DNA of 63,112 bases, counting the filler, from Dugesia japonica (taxonomy: Eukaryota): the NCBI GenBank assembly GCA_001938525.1. It is 5 parts of 5 records of this genome, joined end to end, with 100 filler letters (N's around TTAATTAATTAA, not from the genome) between each part and the next. Parts side by side here need not be neighbours in the genome. Positions count along the whole stretch, not along the records: positions 53,336 to 63,112 come from MQRL01637213.1; 4 more parts are not named here. One strand, given 5' to 3'. Shown here piece by piece: positions 53,336 through 63,112 of this stretch. The notes below the pieces were generated by a model. The model searched no databases, was not told where the DNA came from, and was given only the letters and a program-made list of their open reading frames with translations. The translations under genes and the position numbers were made by a program. The number at the start of each line of letters is the position of its first letter. Within the stretch, counting starts at the first letter, position 1.

Positions 53336-54187
53336 AAAATTTATTTATTATAAAATTTATTACAGATTTTATTTTGGAGTTAATGTTATTTACAAAAAAA
53401 TTAATATCTACTGTCGCGGAAAAATATCGATGATATATTGCGGTTATCAATGAATGAAGCTCTGGTCTAGTTTATGAATAAAATAAGTAAATAAATTTGT
53501 AGGTAACAATGGTCTAAAAAATAAACTATTAATCTTATAAAGTAATAAAGGTTTATTTAATCTTTGTTATACATAAATAATTTTACTTTCTGTACAAATT
53601 TTCTGAAGAAATTTGAATTTAAATGTATTTTATTAAACGATTTAATTACTGTCAATTTAAAAAACGATGCGTAAAAAATAATTTATCAAACACGTGAAAA
53701 TATTTTTGTATTTTTGATGTTGGTTAGCACAATACTGCTTCAGTATTACTTGATGAATACCCATAATTGATTGAGGTATGCAAATTAAACCCATTTTTAT
53801 CCATAAACGAAGTGTTTATTNNNNNNNNNNNNNNNNNNNNNNNNNNNNNNNNNNNNNNNNNNNNNNNNNNNNNNNNNNNNNNNNNNNNNNNNNNNNNNNN
53901 NNNNNNNNNNNNNNNNNNNNNNNNNNNNNNNNNNNNNNNNNNNNNNNNNNNNNNNNNNNNNNNNNNNNNNNNNNNNNNNNNNNNNNNNNNNNNNNNNNNN
54001 NNGAATTATTTTCACTTTTTTCTTTATAAATATAAATTTTACTAGATATTCGGATATTTTTTTTAATAATTTTAAAATAATAATACGCGTGGAAGATATT
54101 TTCTAACATTGTTAAAATTAGATTCAATTAAACATTGAATTAAACATAAGAATTTATTTTAATCTAAATTTAACTAAATTTATTTAG

Positions 54188-55848
54188 ATGAAATTAGAAA
54201 TGGATCTTTCAAAAAGCTATTTCATCCAGATCGATTGGTTACTGGTCCTGAAGATGCCGCAAGTAATTTTGCTAGGGGATTCTTTACCGTTGGAAAGCTC
54301 TTATTAGGAACAATTAATAATGAAACTAGGAGGCTTCTTGAAAATAGTGATTGTATTCAAGGTATATTTTTGTTCAGATCTTTAGGTGGAGGAACTGGAG
54401 CTGGATTAACCTCTGCAATTTTTGACGGTTTGGCTGAATATCCAAAAATTCCTAAAATTGAAGTTCCAATATACCCTTCTCCGACTCTTTCAACAGCAAT
54501 GGTTGAACCTTATAATTGCCTTTTGGGGGAGCATTTTTGTATGGAGGATGTTGATGTTGGACTTCTATTAGATAATGAAGCTTTATATGATATATGTTCC
54601 AAGTATTTAACAATAAATTATCCGACATTCAGTACAATAAACCGTCTTGTTGCTCAGCTTTGTAGTTCAATAACTGCATCTGTCAGATTTGAAAGTGTCA
54701 TGAATTGTGATATTACCGTACTTCAAACTAATTTAGTTCCTTATCCAAGAATACATTTTCCACTTGCTAATTTTGCTCCAATTTTATCTCCTGAAAAGGC
54801 TCAGCATGAAGAATTGTCTGTAATGGAATTAACACGTTATGTTTTTGAAAGAGAAAACCAAATGATGAAAGTTGATCATTCTTTTGGACGTTTTATGTCA
54901 TGTAGTTTACTTTATAGGGGTAATATTAGTCCTTATCATGTTTATCTAGCTTTGACTGAAATTAAAAGAGATAAAAGTATAGAATTTGTTGATTGGTGTC
55001 CTACAGGATTCAAAGTTGGGATAAATGTGTGCCCCCCTACAACAATACCAGCTAGTCAAATAGCACAAACAACTAAAAATGTAACGATGTTAACAAACAC
55101 TTCAGCTATTGGTCAAGCATGGCAAAGATTAACTCACAAATTCTATTTGCTTTATTCTAAAAGATCTTTTGTACATTGGTTTGTTGGTGAAGGTATGGAA
55201 GAATGTGAATTTACAGAATCACTTTATAACATAAGTGCTTTAGTAAAAGACTACGAAGAATCTGCAATGGATGCTAAATACGAAGAAGGAGAAGGGGTAG
55301 TTGATACATCTGCACCAAGTGCTCCAGCGACTAATGGTAGTCTTAATCATGACAATGCTGGTGCTCAAGGACAGGAATATGTTGAAGTAACATCTAGTCA
55401 AAGAGGTAGTTTTGAACAAAAAGATGTTCTATCTAAAAGTGGAATAACTAACGATAATGAAGAGAAGGAAGAAATACAAGAATCTAGAAGAGTGGATTCC
55501 GAAGTAGAAAGTGATAGTAAAAATCCTGTAAGTGAAACAAGAGCTGAAGAAATAGAAACTGAAAAAGTCGAAAATGAAGATATTGGTAAAAGTGAAAATG
55601 ATAATGTAAATGAAGAAAATGAAGGCGAAAATGTAGAAGTAGATAACAACGAAGACAATCAAAATGATATTGATCCAGAAGTTGAAGATGAAAATGAAGA
55701 ATTAGAAACTGAGGAAATCAATGATCTTGGAGGAGCTATTGATGAAACAAGTAATAGTAGTAATAAGATATTTTATCAAAGTGGCAGTGATTCATCTGAA
55801 AAGTCTAACAAATTACCAATAAGATTTTATCAATATAATAAACAATAA
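54188..55848 (+). CDS. Divergent alpha-tubulin with long acidic C-terminal extension (last exon; N-terminal ~75 aa not visible)
   Basis: Exon starts at the phase-1 acceptor in D76 (DEIRNGSFKKLFHPD); motifs GGGTGAG, DNEALYDIC, QTNLVPYPRIHFPL, FVDWCPTGFKVGIN, FVHWFVGEGMEE are alpha-type. Confidence 0.93.
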
Positions 55849-56815
55849 TCCCAGATAATTTACGAAAATGTTTTATTGGCATTATGAATCCTTATAATTG
55901 ATTTCAGTTGCCACTTTATGGCTAAAATTTTAATAAAATATGTTAGTAATTAATCAAATAATTATTTGATGACAAAATAGAAAAAATAATGTCTAATAAC
56001 TGGCTTAATTTTTCAATATTTATTTGTATTTGGTTAGTCATTAATAGTTAATGTGTACTGAATCCATGAAACTAATTGACCTCATATTATTTTATGTTGT
56101 GTCTCTATCTTTCATAAATTAATAAAGATAAAAATTTTTCGTTCAAAGAACTTTTAATTTAATTGCTTTTTAAGTGATTTGTATTATAAAATGAAATTGA
56201 AAATAAAAACTTCGCAATAAAAATTTTGGAAGGAAGTTTTAAAAGAAAACATTTTATATTCATTAGATAGTAACGTATTAGATCATCCCTTGTCAAAGGG
56301 ATATGAAAATTTTGATTGGCCAACACTTAATAGAAAATTCATTTCTTTCAAAATTTTATTTGTCGAAAATTTGCGCGGAGTTTAGAATTTCCTTAGTCAA
56401 TAGTGTATGGTTTCGAATTTTTTATCCGAATTAAAAACTATCCATACATTTTTTAAAGAACTTTNNNNNNNNNNNNNNNNNNNNNNNNNNNNNNNNNNNN
56501 NNNNNNNNNNNNNNNNNNNNNNNNNNNNNNNNNNNNNNTTGATCTACAAATTACTCGGTCAAAATTTATCTTATGGTTCTAGAAATGATAATATTTGATT
56601 CAGAATAAAATTCTGAACATACTTTGTATAGGGTTCGAAAAATAGAAAATTACCGAGTACCATGCCCACCTTGAATAAAAGAAATTATTTATTCTGGAAA
56701 TACTTATGATAAGCAAACAAATTNGATATTGGTGAACTGGGAATAAAAAACTGAACATATTTCGTATAGGATTTACAGTATAAAAATGCTTTGTACAAGA
56801 AATAATATATAATTA

Positions 56816-57345
56816 TGTTGGGCTGAAACAGCTCAGTTAAAAAATAATTTTGAGTAAACTGAGGAAATTGGAGATAAAGAACTCTGAATGCATTAGAAAA
56901 TGATTAAAATTAGAAATTAAAAGAAATAAATTCTATTAAATCATTAATGAATTAACTGATAATAAAATAAATGAATGTATTAAAAAAATCAACCTATCGG
57001 AAATGAAATTAGAAAATAAAGAAGCGAGTAAGATTAAAAGAATCAAAATGAAAAGCTATAATAAAGCATTAATAATAATAAATCTTTAATAAGAAATAAA
57101 ATAAAACAACGATTTCTATAAATCGATAAACTAAGGATCATGAGAATCAGAGACTTGAATAGAAAATCATGATTAGATTAAAAGAAACAGACAGACATTT
57201 ATCATCGAAATAAATTAAATGCTCGGAAAATACTACGAAAAGTTCAGATTTAATTATTGAGAAAAATTAAATAAACTTAGAAACAATTGGTCATTAAAAT
57301 AAATTATAATAAAAGCGGAAATTCATAACTGAAAGTGCTCAAGAA
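56816..57345 (+). mobile_element. Truncated 5' end of family Y element
   Basis: TGTTGGGCTGAAACAGCTC...; collinear with the reverse complement of 43500-44071. Confidence 0.7.
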
Positions 57346-57869
57346 GATGATAAATCGATTAAAGAAAGCGAATAATAAAGTCAGAAATACAAAGAGTAAT
57401 TTCGGTTGGTTCAAGAATTTGCAATTCTTTAACATTATCGGAACTGTCGAAATTCAAAGTTCCGTCTGAACCAGAACAATTTTCAGATGAAGTGTTTTGC
57501 CTATTCATCATATTATTAATAATACTAGTTAAGAATTGATTTCTGTGAATGAATTTTAACCTTTTATTATCTGTCAACGAAATTGAAGATAATTGGATCA
57601 ACACCACAAGCTGCTTCCAATAACTTCTTTCCTTTCTGTGGATTTTTTACATATTCTAAATAATTGATTGTGCGACGAAAAAATTTGTCTGCATATACGA
57701 TTGAAGTTGTTCAGTTTTAGTGCGGTTGTTGTCTTTAATCGCATTTTCAAAATGATGACATGAAGATGACCAATTCAGCCAAACTGCTGATACAGTTTTA
57801 AAGGAGCTGGCCACCCATAGGACGTTAAATATATATACATATATATTTCTACACCGATGGCGGTTGCAA

Positions 57870-58997
57870 ATTTTTCAATTTCCTTTTGATTTTTCAGAGA
57901 TTGACTATATAAAAAAGTAGAACTTGTTCATAAATATTTGAAAATGATTGACCCCATTAACCTCAGAAAAAGCATCTTCTATTGACAACTCATGCCGGTG
58001 GTTTAGATTCGGATATTTATGGGTTAATCTTGTTTCTACTCCGGATTTTCTTCCTAACATAATACTGGCCCGTCGCTTGAAAATAATATTAAATGGTGCT
58101 TTAAATAATTATCATCAAAAATATTTTTTCCAAACATTTTAAGAGACATTCTGTTATTGTTTTAGCTATTTAATCCTGCAATTCAATTAAATGAGGATCT
58201 TTTATTTTATCTGTTTTGCATTTATAATAAATAAAAAGTACAGATTTTTTACTTAAAGTGGTAGATTCATCTATTATAATAGATAAATTTCCTTGAATTT
58301 TTAATATTTGTTGACAAATTTTGGATTTCATTTGAATTCCTATATGATTGATTATTTCTGTAGATTTTAATCTAGATCGTAATCCATGAGCTATAATAGA
58401 TCCATTCATTTCTTGCAGTTTTAATAAATCAAAATGATCAGAATATGGGCGATCATGTTTACCAATATAATACTCAGTTCTAAAACCTTTACTGGTGCTA
58501 AAAATTTCAGAATCATTCATCTTATCTACAATAACTGCGAGCCTTTGCTTGTTTGCTTCTTTTAAGATTTTCTCAGCTGTTGTATAGGAAAAACGTTTAC
58601 AATGTTCATACCTTTTTTCCGCAAAGTTAGTTATGAAGCTTTATACTTTCGAAAAGCTGATACCATAGTGCCACTCCATTCTTTTGAGATGCTTACTCCC
58701 TGCGTTTTTAAAGGTCCTAGAGGATGGAAAGCCAAATAAGTCAGACATCCTAATTTTCCGGAATCGCATTTTAGCCAAGTATATTTTTTCTTTTCGAAGA
58801 TAATATCTGAAGTCCAAATACTCAGCCAATTTATTATTAGTGGTTCTTCTTCTTTTTGAAAATTTTCTGTTGATGCTGATAGAATGTTCATTTATTTTTT
58901 TCTTGTTTTCTAGAACTAGTACGTCTTCTTTTTGTTGCGTTTTAAGTTTTTTTTCGAAGATAATATCCAAAGTGGGTTGTTTACGTTTTTCTCTCAT
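57870..58997 (-). pseudogene. hAT transposase remnant (KIAA1586/ZNF862-like)
   Basis: WLKCDSGKLGC, YYIGKHDRPYSD, SIIIDESTTLSKKSVL and DGASIMLGRKSGV; frameshifted. Confidence 0.85.
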
Positions 58998-59179
58998 TTA
59001 TAATTTTAAATATAACAAATTAATTTTTATTTTAGATTTTATGAAATAATATTTCAATAATTAATTGTATATATGCTTTTATTTAAGNTCCTAAAATATA
59101 ATTAAACTAAATTAAATTTTGAAAAAGATTGACTTAAAAAATATTTAAACACTTATATCTATATTTTAACCTTTAATAT

Positions 59180-59258
59180 TATATATATATATATATTAGT
59201 CATTGACGGGATTCGAACGTACATCCACTGGTTCGGATTGGCGCTTTATTGCCATTGT
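59180..59258 (-). repeat. tRNA-derived SINE-like remnant with (TA)n tail
   Basis: Minus-strand B-box-like GTTCGAATCCCG followed by (TA)n; no intact cloverleaf. Confidence 0.4.
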
Positions 59259-59389
59259 CGAAGTTTGTAGTTTGATAGTATGATATGTAATATATCAAAC
59301 ACAAAATGCTTGCTGTTTATTTATTTTAGAAAAGACAAAATATATTTATATATTTATATTTTTTATATTTATATATTTATATATTTAAT

Positions 59390-59535
59390 AGCTAATATGT
59401 TTTTTATAGAAAAATGTTTTAGCTAATATGTTTTTATTTTGGAAAAATACCTAGCTAATATGTTTTTGTGGGAAAATGTCCTAGCTAATATGTTTTTGTG
59501 GAAAAATGTCCTAGCTAAAATGTATTTTAAGGAAA
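59390..59535. repeat. ~31-bp tandem repeat AGCTAATATGTTTTTGTGGGAAAATGTCCT
   Basis: About 5 copies. Confidence 0.85.
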
Positions 59536-59939
59536 AACGATATATGCTTCTTTCAGTCTACTAAGAAATTTCCTATGCTTTTTATATTTTATAAAAAAAT
59601 GTTATTGAAATTATTATTAAAATCATTAAGTTATTATTATTATTTTATTATTATGTTATTATTTTTTTATTAAATTTTAATTAAAATCACATAATTATTT
59701 TAGAGAATTGTCAATTATACAGAAATCATTGCGCAAGTTGTAGTCACAATGGTGACTGTCATAGTATCATGGAAGGATACTATTACCAACTATTTTATGG
59801 GAAAACCTATTTTGTATGCCCTTATTGAAAAATATTAGGTTTCGAAAAGTATTAAAATTTTTATAGAACACATAAGAACCACATATCATATTTTAGTACT
59901 AGTAAAAAACATATATTAAAATCAATATTAGATAGGCAG

Positions 59940-60730
59940 ATGGTCAGTATGCATTACAAAAAACCAGTAAATAAGAGAATTAAGTTGAAAGAAATAACAG
60001 TTAAGGGTGAGATTATTGAAATAATTATTATTGAAGATGACGTTGATGAAATAACAATCAAAGATGAACCTGTTGAAATGATTGTAATTGATTATGACGT
60101 TGAAGAAATCATCAATTTGGAACCGGAAGAAGAAGAGGAAATAAATATTGAATCAGATGATTAGAACAATTTCAAAATTATTGATGAACTCGATAAAGAA
60201 GATATTGTATTGCAAGAGTTCATTGCTGCAAAAAATAATCAAGTTGAAGAATAAACAAAAACTGGGGATGATGGAGTTATTATTGAATCTGATTTGTATC
60301 GCTGCCATAGGATACTTAAAATAAATGTTTCAAGATGGTATTGTCGTGAAATTATTTTACCAGAAGCAATAGTCACCAAATTATTTCAGACAATAATTCA
60401 GAAATTAAGCAATTTAAAATACAATTTGGGGTACATGTTGAGTTCAAAAGCATAACAACAACTGTTGATGGAGAAGAAGCGGAGTTTAAAACCTGTCAGA
60501 TATAAAATATAGACGTTGCATTAACTGATAACATTTTTGAAGACGACATCAACCAATTAAATGATTAAATAACAATAAGAAGCGAACTAGGCTCCAGTTG
60601 GATGTTAAACCAAATACTAGAAATTAATTTTAAGACCACAAAAGTTGCAGGTATTTGTAGAGTTTCAAATAAAAATTATATTCCAACGCCGGAAGATTTA
60701 AAAAAGAAACGATGATAATTACTGTTTTAT
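59940..60730 (+). pseudogene. Polinton protein-primed DNA polymerase B N-terminal remnant
   Basis: GSSWMLNQILEINF...NYIPTPEDLKKK followed by NDDNYCF resembles the pPolB GSGW...YIPLP...N.DN.CF region; multiple stops. Confidence 0.6.
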
Positions 60731-63112
60731 TTACAAATTACTGTTTTATTTAAAAATTATTTATTTACAGAATTTTTGCTGTCACCAAAAGTGATCAAGT
60801 TGGAGCAAGGAATTTTACTATCTATATCAGCAAAAATTGAAGCACAACAATTGAAGCACAAAAATTAAGAATCAGTAAACTAATAGTTCGAGCAAGTCTG
60901 TCAAGACGAATGTAATTGAAATTATTTGGAAAGATATCATTTGAAGTTAATTTTATTTGAAAATGGAATTGTGACATAAATGATTTGGCGAATATAGTAT
61001 TATTTGAAGTTTGCAGGAGATTATTTTTTTGAAAACTAGAAAATTAAAATAGTCTAATGATATTACTGAGAAATCAGAGAAACGGTGATTTGATGATTCT
61101 ATCGCCAAATTGGAAAGTAATTGGAACTTGAAAAAGAACTTAATTAAGCGAAGAAGAATTTTAATTTTTAAAATATGAATTTGAATATCAAGTAATCAAG
61201 AAATTTTGGAAAAAAATGCAGCTTTATCTATAAGTGAAATCAGAAGGCTGTAAACTGTAAATAAAATGGAAAAATATCATCGGTATTATTAAACTAAAGA
61301 ACAAAAGTTAGAATTTCAGCAAAAAAACTATATTGGAATCCCTGTAAAATATATTTAATTATTAGTAAAAACATTATTAATGTAAATAAATGAAGACTAT
61401 ATTATTAAATCATCCTTAATTTTAGAAATGTATGCCAAAAATGCATCAAATAAAAGACAAAATGTAGATCATAAAACAGAAATGGAATTCAATGGAAAAG
61501 AAGTAGAGAAATTAATAAGTCTATTGAAAAAAAAGGAAGCTACAATAACACGTATGAGTCATTGGATAGATTCACTAGAAGTCAAAAATAAAAAACAAAC
61601 TTCAAAAGTAGCTTCAATATTTATTCATTCAAATTTACATTACTGTGATCTGAAGTGATTATAATCGAATATTACCTTTTACATTATTCTAATCAACTTG
61701 ATTTATTGATTGCATAAAAATTTGTATATTATAGTAGAATTAAAACTTATGCAACAATGATTAGTTTTATTTATCTTCTTTTCTTTTCTTTGTTATATTT
61801 CTGACCAATCGGAAGTCTTGTCTGATAAGGAATCTTTTGACCTGGTGGTGACAAGTGAAGAGTTAATGAGAAGTAAAAATAGTAGTGAAAGCAAATGGGG
61901 GAAAATGGCCTGAAAAAGAAAGAAAAACAAAAAAATGACACAAAGTGAAGAAGAAATTGTGAGGTTGTTGCTATGAAGTAAAAGGAAATTAAAATGACGA
62001 ATAAAGTAGAAGTGAAAAACATGAGAACAATAAACTGTAGGTGGAAGAAAAATACAAAACAATCGTAGAAACCAAAAGGAGAAATAACAAAAATGTAATA
62101 GATCTGAAATGTTAGAGTGTAAATCAATATAAAAATATTAAAAACGATTGTTGGAATCAGAATTCCGGGACGGAATTTTTCTGAAGCCCCCCAGTAATTT
62201 ATTGGGCTAGAACACATATATTAATAAAATTAAAATTCAGCAGGTCAAGGAGATAAAGGTGTGAAAGGGTGTGATGATTGTGAGTTATGGTTGGTCAGAT
62301 TTATTAATTTTTGGAATGATCTTGGAAAACAAAAATTGTTTGATGAGTTATATTATTATATGTAGTAGTGGTATTATTTAATCATTATTATTATTGTTTA
62401 GTAGATTTAGATTTGTCGTTATATAAAATATTTTTGGCATGAATCTGGACTAATGAGATAATTTTTTCATAGTCCAAATTTTAATCATCCAGGAAAAAAA
62501 CCAGGATAAAAAAATTATAATAAAGAAATGATAGATTGTGTGTGCAAATGTGTCGCCAGTGTGTTGCATCGTTCGTTATAAAATCGAACGACGCATTCAC
62601 ATTAGTCAGTTGATTTAGTTTTTAAAAAAATGGAATTTATTTGAGGTTTAATTTGAAAGATATTATTATTGATTATTTCGATATAATTATTGATTATTGT
62701 CATTTTTATTTATTTATTTTAATTGGTTGATAGGTTAAAGATCAAGTTACATTAACGATTCATATTAGTTTTGTGTTATTTCATGAATTAGATTGTGCGG
62801 GTTATTTTTATCAGCTGCGTTTTTCACTGATAAATAGAATTCATAATAAAGACATTATTTCATTATGTTAAATGTTTAAATAATTTGAAAACTGTTGGTC
62901 ACTTTGATATTGATAATATTGTGTTGTTGTGAAAATTGTTTGCATTTCTGATGTTTTGTTTTCTTACCTCAAATATAAATTTATAAATTGCAAATGAAAT
63001 ATTTCAGAATATGTGGGAACTCATGAAAGGAAATAAAGTTCAATTAATAAATGAAGTTAATAATTAGTTGATTTGCAATATTTGTAATGAATTGATGATG
63101 AAGGCTTGTAAT

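Follow-up and report, generated by a model that had tools for sequence, protein, structure and literature searches.

Glu254 of alpha-tubulin completes the GTPase site on the beta subunit of the next dimer and is treated as an invariant catalytic residue, to the point that human E254 mutants, with their hyperstable GTP-state microtubules, serve as models of the 'GTP cap'. Among the engineered human proteins, E254A, E254N and E254Q have no catalytic carboxylate and are hydrolysis-deficient, and E254D is slow (PMC7018511, PMC8764682, PMC11893814). In E254A, hydrolysis is blocked, nucleation is strong and the resulting GTP microtubules are stable; the same mutation is lethal in yeast, and E254D slows hydrolysis (PMC7018511). 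Stable GTP microtubules are likewise obtained with E254Q and E254N (PMC11893814; PMC8764682). A natural alpha-tubulin without Glu254 was not found in the literature on E254 mutants, on flatworm tubulins, in a review of the tapeworm cytoskeleton or in a survey of the tubulin family.

Among flatworms, five alpha isotypes of Fasciola hepatica were described by Ryan et al. (2008), all of them with the signature loop GGGTGSG (PMC3820024). These isotypes 1–5 and the gene D915_001685 are, like the gene considered here, flatworm alpha paralogues, several of which are divergent and testis-enriched. Other non-canonical alpha paralogues, such as ciliate alpha-like tubulins and alpha-tubulins devoid of an E-hook, likewise have no tail motifs at which glutamylation or tyrosination could occur (PMC9294176, PMC4202323); these two sources give no state for position 254.

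The gene analysed here belongs to Dugesia japonica (assembly GCA_001938525.1) and lies in a window of 63,112 nucleotides, filler included, by which the whole stretch of DNA is meant. The part analysed, positions 53336–63112, comes from record MQRL01637213.1, and all coordinates count along the whole stretch. The encoded protein belongs by sequence to the same fold family as canonical alpha-tubulin (TUBA1B, TUBA4A; PDB 3j8x, 8ixf), with ~58% identity over residues 76–445, and shares with it the N-site GTP loops, Asp251, Lys352, the core of the M-loop and the H12 glutamates 411–417. In contrast to canonical alpha-tubulin, it has Val254, the loop GGGTGAG and an extension of ~180 residues in place of the EEY tail, and its relatives are without Lys40, begin with MREV and display 27 clade-fixed substitutions. 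The engineered mutants are changed at the same position, but they are point changes to Ala, Asn, Gln or Asp in a canonical protein, whereas the flatworm isotype is natural, spans several classes, has Val and is accompanied by many other changes.

Gene structure, transcription and the codon at position 254

The features of the locus are as follows.

53821–54002, no strand: run of N, upstream of the tubulin exon
54186–54187, plus strand: splice acceptor AG, preceded by a T-rich tract, of a phase 1 intron that falls inside the Asp76 codon, between G and AT
54188–55296, plus strand: tubulin body in the last coding exon, residues 76 to ~445 (phmmer against PDB, Pfam)
54262–54264, plus strand: AGT, Ser at Asn101, in AASNFARG (translation, PDB alignment)
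54385–54405, plus strand: signature loop GGGTGAG instead of GGGTGSG, with Ala147 (translation, alignment)
54718–54720, plus strand: GTA, Val at catalytic Glu254, where helix H8 begins, following loop T7 (translation, PDB alignment)
55297–55845, plus strand: C-terminal extension of ~180 residues, acidic and Asn/Ser-rich, in place of the EEY tail (translation)
55846–55848, plus strand: stop codon TAA (sequence)
55849–55970, plus strand: 3′ untranslated region with AATAAA at 55932–55937 (sequence and RNA coverage, which ends at ~55970–55994)

The part analysed has a G+C content of 27% and contains two runs of N. Its plus strand holds a single long open frame extending from the acceptor AG to the TAA, in which 54188–55845 form one exon encoding alpha-tubulin from Asp76 onward, followed by the extra residues. 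For 553 codons without a stop at 27% GC the chance expectation is ~4e-24; the GC3 of the gene is 0.18. With three full-length relatives as queries, tblastn found no match for residues 1–56/75 within 53336–63112. The Fasciola hepatica orthologue has its intron at the same point, with residues 2–75, a 5.3 kb intron and then residues 76–442. Neighbouring ORFs have no Pfam match.

Identity as an alpha-tubulin is supported by several methods. The best 60 matches in a phmmer search of all PDB chains are all alpha-tubulins (E ~1e-137, best 3e-137), aligned over chain residues 76–445 with one single-residue gap. Pfam recognizes PF00091 (Tubulin, E = 5.8e-29), partially because residues 1–75 are missing, and PF03953 (Tubulin_C, E = 2.1e-36). 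In the tree, the protein groups with alpha-tubulins at an alpha/beta split supported at 100%. Beta-tubulins, with Lys254 in all retrieved sequences, would resemble it in presenting a T7/H8 face that is non-catalytic toward the nucleotide it covers, but differ from it by this position in the tree and by having Lys instead of Val.

The initial annotation had reported a Glu-to-Val change at position 254, and the alignment to solved alpha-tubulins bears this out. On the plus strand, 54700–54740 contains ATG AAT TGT GAT ATT ACC GTA CTT CAA ACT AAT, that is MNCDITVLQTN, which phmmer aligns gap-free with ALNVDLTEFQTN of TUBA4A, TUBA1D and TUBA1B; MNCDITVLQTNLVPYPR in the window thus faces the canonical ALNVDLTEFQTNLVPYPR, and the GTA at 54718–54720 is at the position of Glu254. 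Asp251 is kept in the PDB alignment, as had been stated. The Ser reported at Asn101 (AASNFARG) is indeed encoded; as a trait of the family it does not stand, since 17 of 23 clade members have Asn and N101S is limited to this gene and its nearest relatives. The change from GGGTGSG to GGGTGAG goes beyond what had been noted, and Ala147 is found in 16 of 23 clade members. The N-site GTP residues D98, S140, G143–G146, E183, N206 and N228 are kept, with the variations N101S, S147A and Y224F, and full-length relatives also have G10, Q11, D69 and E71 of the same site. An AlphaFold2 model of the protein has a mean pLDDT of only 42.7, because of the N-terminal truncation and a shallow alignment.

Four public sequencing runs were compared with 54003–56464. 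In the DNA-like run X15, coverage is even over the exon and its two flanks; the only departures of its contig over 54003–55007 from the assembly are at 54089, 54092 and 54528, plus a 12-base deletion in the intron (54126). Coverage by the RNA-like run X1 is confined to 54185–55970, with a contig over 54514–54798 that spans the GTA codon without change, and raw RNA reads (X22) occur only within 54169–55994. No run compared has an alternative letter at 54718–54720. The caveat raised initially, that GAA and GTA are one base apart, is answered by the agreement of independent DNA-like and RNA-like runs on GTA. One X1 contig fits the exon from 54185 and continues upstream with sequence whose translation, ...LFVDLEPTV, corresponds to the end of the alpha-tubulin exon before it, and therefore the transcript is spliced; the gene, whose expression and upstream exons had been named as points to settle, is transcribed and joined to a tubulin-coding exon outside the part analysed. 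Because X1 contigs cover 55283–55970 without joints, the tail is present in the mRNA.

Differences between strains seen in the reads are synonymous at 9 of 9 sites in the tubulin body and non-synonymous at 3 of 6 in the tail. Run X22 shows ~1% fixed differences from the window; together with the 12-base deletion in X15, this implies that more than one strain or haplotype is represented in the public data. A depth spike was also observed at 54722–54762, with ~170-fold word depth in X1 and 29 partly fitting reads in X23. The flanks of the spike reads translate to GALNVDLNEF, with Glu254 and Asn253; these reads thus come from a canonical alpha-tubulin paralogue that the same organism expresses at a high level.

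A flatworm clade and its constraints

A word search returned one close relative (P0002, 94–96% identity) and a graded series of flatworm proteins with 58–74% identity to the D. japonica protein. Cluster mates included, the named members come from plagiorchiid trematodes (Fasciola, Fasciolopsis, Echinostoma, Paragonimus, Calicophoron, Clonorchis, Opisthorchis), from the monogenean Protopolystoma and from cestodes (Echinococcus, Taenia, Hydatigera, Hymenolepis, Rodentolepis, Schistocephalus, Spirometra, Sparganum). In public records, these genes are annotated simply as 'Tubulin alpha chain'. Position 254 is Val in 37 and Thr in 5 of 42 clade members and cluster mates, Thr being the residue of diphyllobothriidean cestodes, while the canonical alpha-tubulins of the same retrieval have Glu254 in 100 of 100 cases and the beta-tubulins have Lys. 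A further profile word search with the clade alignment gave no additional named members, and a look-up in the ESM Atlas gave generic tubulin clusters only.

In the maximum-likelihood tree, the D. japonica protein pairs with P0002 within a clade of 24 sequences (support 100/100) that a long branch sets apart from canonical alpha-tubulins. Glu254 occurs in 0 of these 24, with Val, Ile, Ala or Thr in its place. Since the gene is intact and expressed and Glu254 is absent from all 23 other members, the earlier proposal of a natural isotype is upheld. Shared features of the clade, all found in the D. japonica protein, are GFFT, RSLGGGTG, GEHF.MED and a non-acidic residue at 254. Judged from alignment and tree, the clade appears to be old and flatworm-wide, Glu254 having been replaced by a small hydrophobic residue, here Val.

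Cestodes, the monogenean and trematodes form a neodermatan subgroup (100/99). Outside it stand the D. japonica protein, P0002, P0057, P0082, three Logan transcripts, four sequences with Ile, Ala or Val at 254, and P0160 (Ala). The window gene is therefore not a fluke gene, and together with the GC3 of 0.18 its placement points to a free-living flatworm such as a planarian and away from a schistosome. Its membership of the trematode orthologue group was rejected: forcing the join costs 71 log-likelihood units (AU p = 1.7e-5, for a grouping named after the tree had been seen). No clade member labelled Schistosoma or Trichobilharzia was found by word search or profile word search, which is weak evidence of absence; blood flukes may have lost a gene that plagiorchiid flukes, the monogenean and tapeworms possess, so that the family would not be universal in flatworms.

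Two further observations concern individual records. Loci L002 and L005 of one sample (SRR33002330) yield P0062 and P0067, two members of the window's subgroup with 71% mutual identity, so that this organism seems to carry at least two Val254 paralogues. The 90% cluster of P0078 (Echinococcus) contains unrelated Taenia proteins and a fragment of 136 residues labelled Glycocaulis profundi that has the tapeworm Val254 motif, oddities that probably arose through clustering or contamination in the underlying records.

Purifying selection on the gene is clear. A dN/dS of 0.09 was obtained for two relatives (transcript contigs), with dS 1.3 near saturation; it is given for this one closer pair only because dS between the window and its relatives is saturated. 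Residues conserved in the clade include those that hold the protein's own GTP (G10, Q11, D69, E71, D98, G143–G146, E183, N206, N228), Asp251 (invariant) and Asn258 in T7/H8, Lys352, Arg402, Glu411–417 of helix H12, and P274, K280 and E284 in the M-loop core. Lost or changed are Glu254, Lys40, Cys316, E423, D424 and the acidic tyrosinated tail. At position 40, nearly all relatives have Pro or a gap (the corresponding exon of the D. japonica gene is outside the part analysed), and their N-terminus reads MREV, not MREC. Further fixed differences number 27, among them Y103F, H139R and F141L, and these could change assembly. Positions 253 and 255 are Thr/Asn and Leu/Ile/Met across the clade, with an acidic residue in none. 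The loss of Glu254 is specific to the clade and not general to divergent flatworm tubulins, given that P0326, another divergent alpha-tubulin of Fasciola, keeps Glu254 and GGGTGSG.

The tail follows other rules. In the last 191 residues of the D. japonica protein, Asp and Glu make up 28% and Lys and Arg 8%, and the extension has no Pfam match. Tails of relatives are either short and non-acidic or long and variable, unrelated to each other and of very different lengths; that of P0082 is long, acidic and rich in Asn, and that of P0057 is long and rich in Asn, Lys and Ser. With half of its strain differences non-synonymous and no related tail among relatives, the acidic tail is fast-evolving.

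To place position 254 in a wider frame, representatives of 50%-identity protein clusters were searched exhaustively and the residue was scored in the best 147. Glu was found in 97 of these, Asp in 13, Lys in 12 (beta-tubulins), Gln in 11, Ile in 4, Ala in 3, Val and Ser in 2 each, and His, Gly and Leu in 1 each. Those representatives with neither Glu nor Lys that were placed in the tree are all on the alpha side of the alpha/beta split. By these counts, loss of the catalytic glutamate recurs among divergent alpha-like tubulins. The Gln, Asp and His cases may mark further undescribed alpha-like families.

Divergent alpha-like clusters without Glu254 include P0156, P0157, P0159, P0160, P0181, P0186, P0188, P0192, P0193 and P0197. 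Three of them (P0157, P0181 and P0193) carry UniParc numbers assigned in one batch with those of the window gene's nearest relatives, a hint that a single genome holds a more extensive set of such paralogues. The clade lacking Glu254 may have undergone expansion in free-living flatworms, with several paralogues having Val, Ile or Ala at 254.

Predicted behaviour in the microtubule lattice

The reading somewhat favoured here is that the gene is an expressed paralogue of an old clade lacking Glu254, the product of which would enter the lattice without activating hydrolysis and so give stable GTP-like microtubules in the male germ line. The N-site GTP residues, Asp251, Lys352 and most of H12 are kept, and on these grounds pairing with beta-tubulin and entry into the microtubule lattice are probable. 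The minus-end face of a Val254 subunit would then fail to activate GTP hydrolysis on the beta subunit below. We infer this loss of hydrolysis from the published E254A/N/Q/D mutants, and by the same analogy microtubules built from the isotype would probably be unusually stable: a lattice rich in it should stay GTP-like and resist catastrophe, as with engineered E254A/N/Q, and stabilization would be expected in proportion to its share. Since Lys40 and the tyrosinated acidic tail are absent, the clade would also escape the usual acetylation and tyrosination marks.

The likeliest use of the isotype is in the male germ line, in long-lived microtubule arrays, because the liver-fluke orthologue is a testis marker; the sperm role suggested initially has indirect support from this. 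This F. hepatica member of the clade (THD23391.1 = UniProt A0A4E0RB94 = D915_006002) is listed as a testis-cluster marker in the supplementary marker table of a spatial transcriptome, with an AUC of 0.916 and a log2FC of 1.52, and is detected in 98.9% of testis spots versus 54.2% of other spots (PMC11484910). As it has GGGTGAG and Val254, it is a sixth, previously undescribed gene beside isotypes 1–5. The testis alpha-tubulin D915_001685 (A0A4E0S3J4) was ruled out as the orthologue.

More tentatively, a GTPase-dead alpha-tubulin family may have been kept for hundreds of millions of years to build permanently GTP-state microtubules, for instance in the cortical or axonemal arrays of sperm. If true, flatworms would have in this clade a natural equivalent of the engineered E254 changes, which are lethal elsewhere, and animals would deploy hydrolysis-incompetent tubulin on purpose. 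It would also offer a physiological GTP lattice in which lattice spacing, EB and motor binding, and severing could be studied, and could help to account for the high stability of microtubule arrays in flatworm sperm. The orthologue in parasitic flatworms, where tubulin is a drug target, is a lineage-specific tubulin of the reproductive system.

Other readings were weighed against this one. Instead of forming the bulk of a lattice, the protein could be a specialized subunit that nucleates microtubules or binds their ends, with small amounts of dimer unable to hydrolyse GTP seeding or capping them, or it could be a non-polymerizing buffer for beta-tubulin. Such a role, suggested by the strong nucleation of E254A at low concentration (PMC7018511), would agree with the low RNA depth in X1 (few-fold, versus the ~170-fold word depth of the canonical paralogue), and a change of partners is suggested by the long, variable tail and by an H12 surface in which E423 and D424 are replaced. 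It is nevertheless unlikely: lateral and longitudinal contacts are largely kept (P274, K280, E284, K352, R402), and with contact elements so conserved a lattice subunit fits better than a free one.

It would be rather improbable that hydrolysis is retained, or merely slowed, through another residue or a co-evolved beta-tubulin, the point of the isotype being instead its tail, the missing Lys40 and its surface for motors and MAPs. All tested non-acidic replacements of E254 (Ala, Asn, Gln) abolish hydrolysis, and no clade member has gained an acidic residue at 253 or 255 that might substitute, even though Asp251 is invariant across the clade, flatworm testes express several divergent and possibly co-adapted alpha- and beta-tubulins, and many divergent alpha-like clusters have Asp or Gln at 254, E254D being a mutant that only slows hydrolysis. 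That Val254 reflects a mistake in sequencing or assembly, or that the gene is a decaying and unexpressed copy, might be argued from the single-base change and from the upstream exons missing in the part analysed, but has a negligible probability and is refuted by independent runs that agree on GTA, by a spliced transcript with a polyadenylation signal, by the 553-codon open frame at 27% GC, by strain variants that are all synonymous in the tubulin body, and by the occurrence of the substitution in >40 sequences from three parasitic classes.

Repeats and broken frames downstream of the gene

On the minus strand, 57359–58997 contains several short broken ORFs of 82–118 residues without Pfam match, which resemble remnants of a hAT-type transposase. 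Further on, an AT-rich microsatellite (59340–59390) precedes a tandem array at 59389–59537, with a 30-base unit (consensus TAGCTAATATGTTTTTATGGAAAAATGTCC) present in 4.8 copies with 82% matches. ARAGORN called no tRNA in 53336–63112. The stretch 59200–59270 contains GGGATTCGAAC, resembling the reverse complement of a tRNA T-arm, and may be a tRNA-derived repeat.
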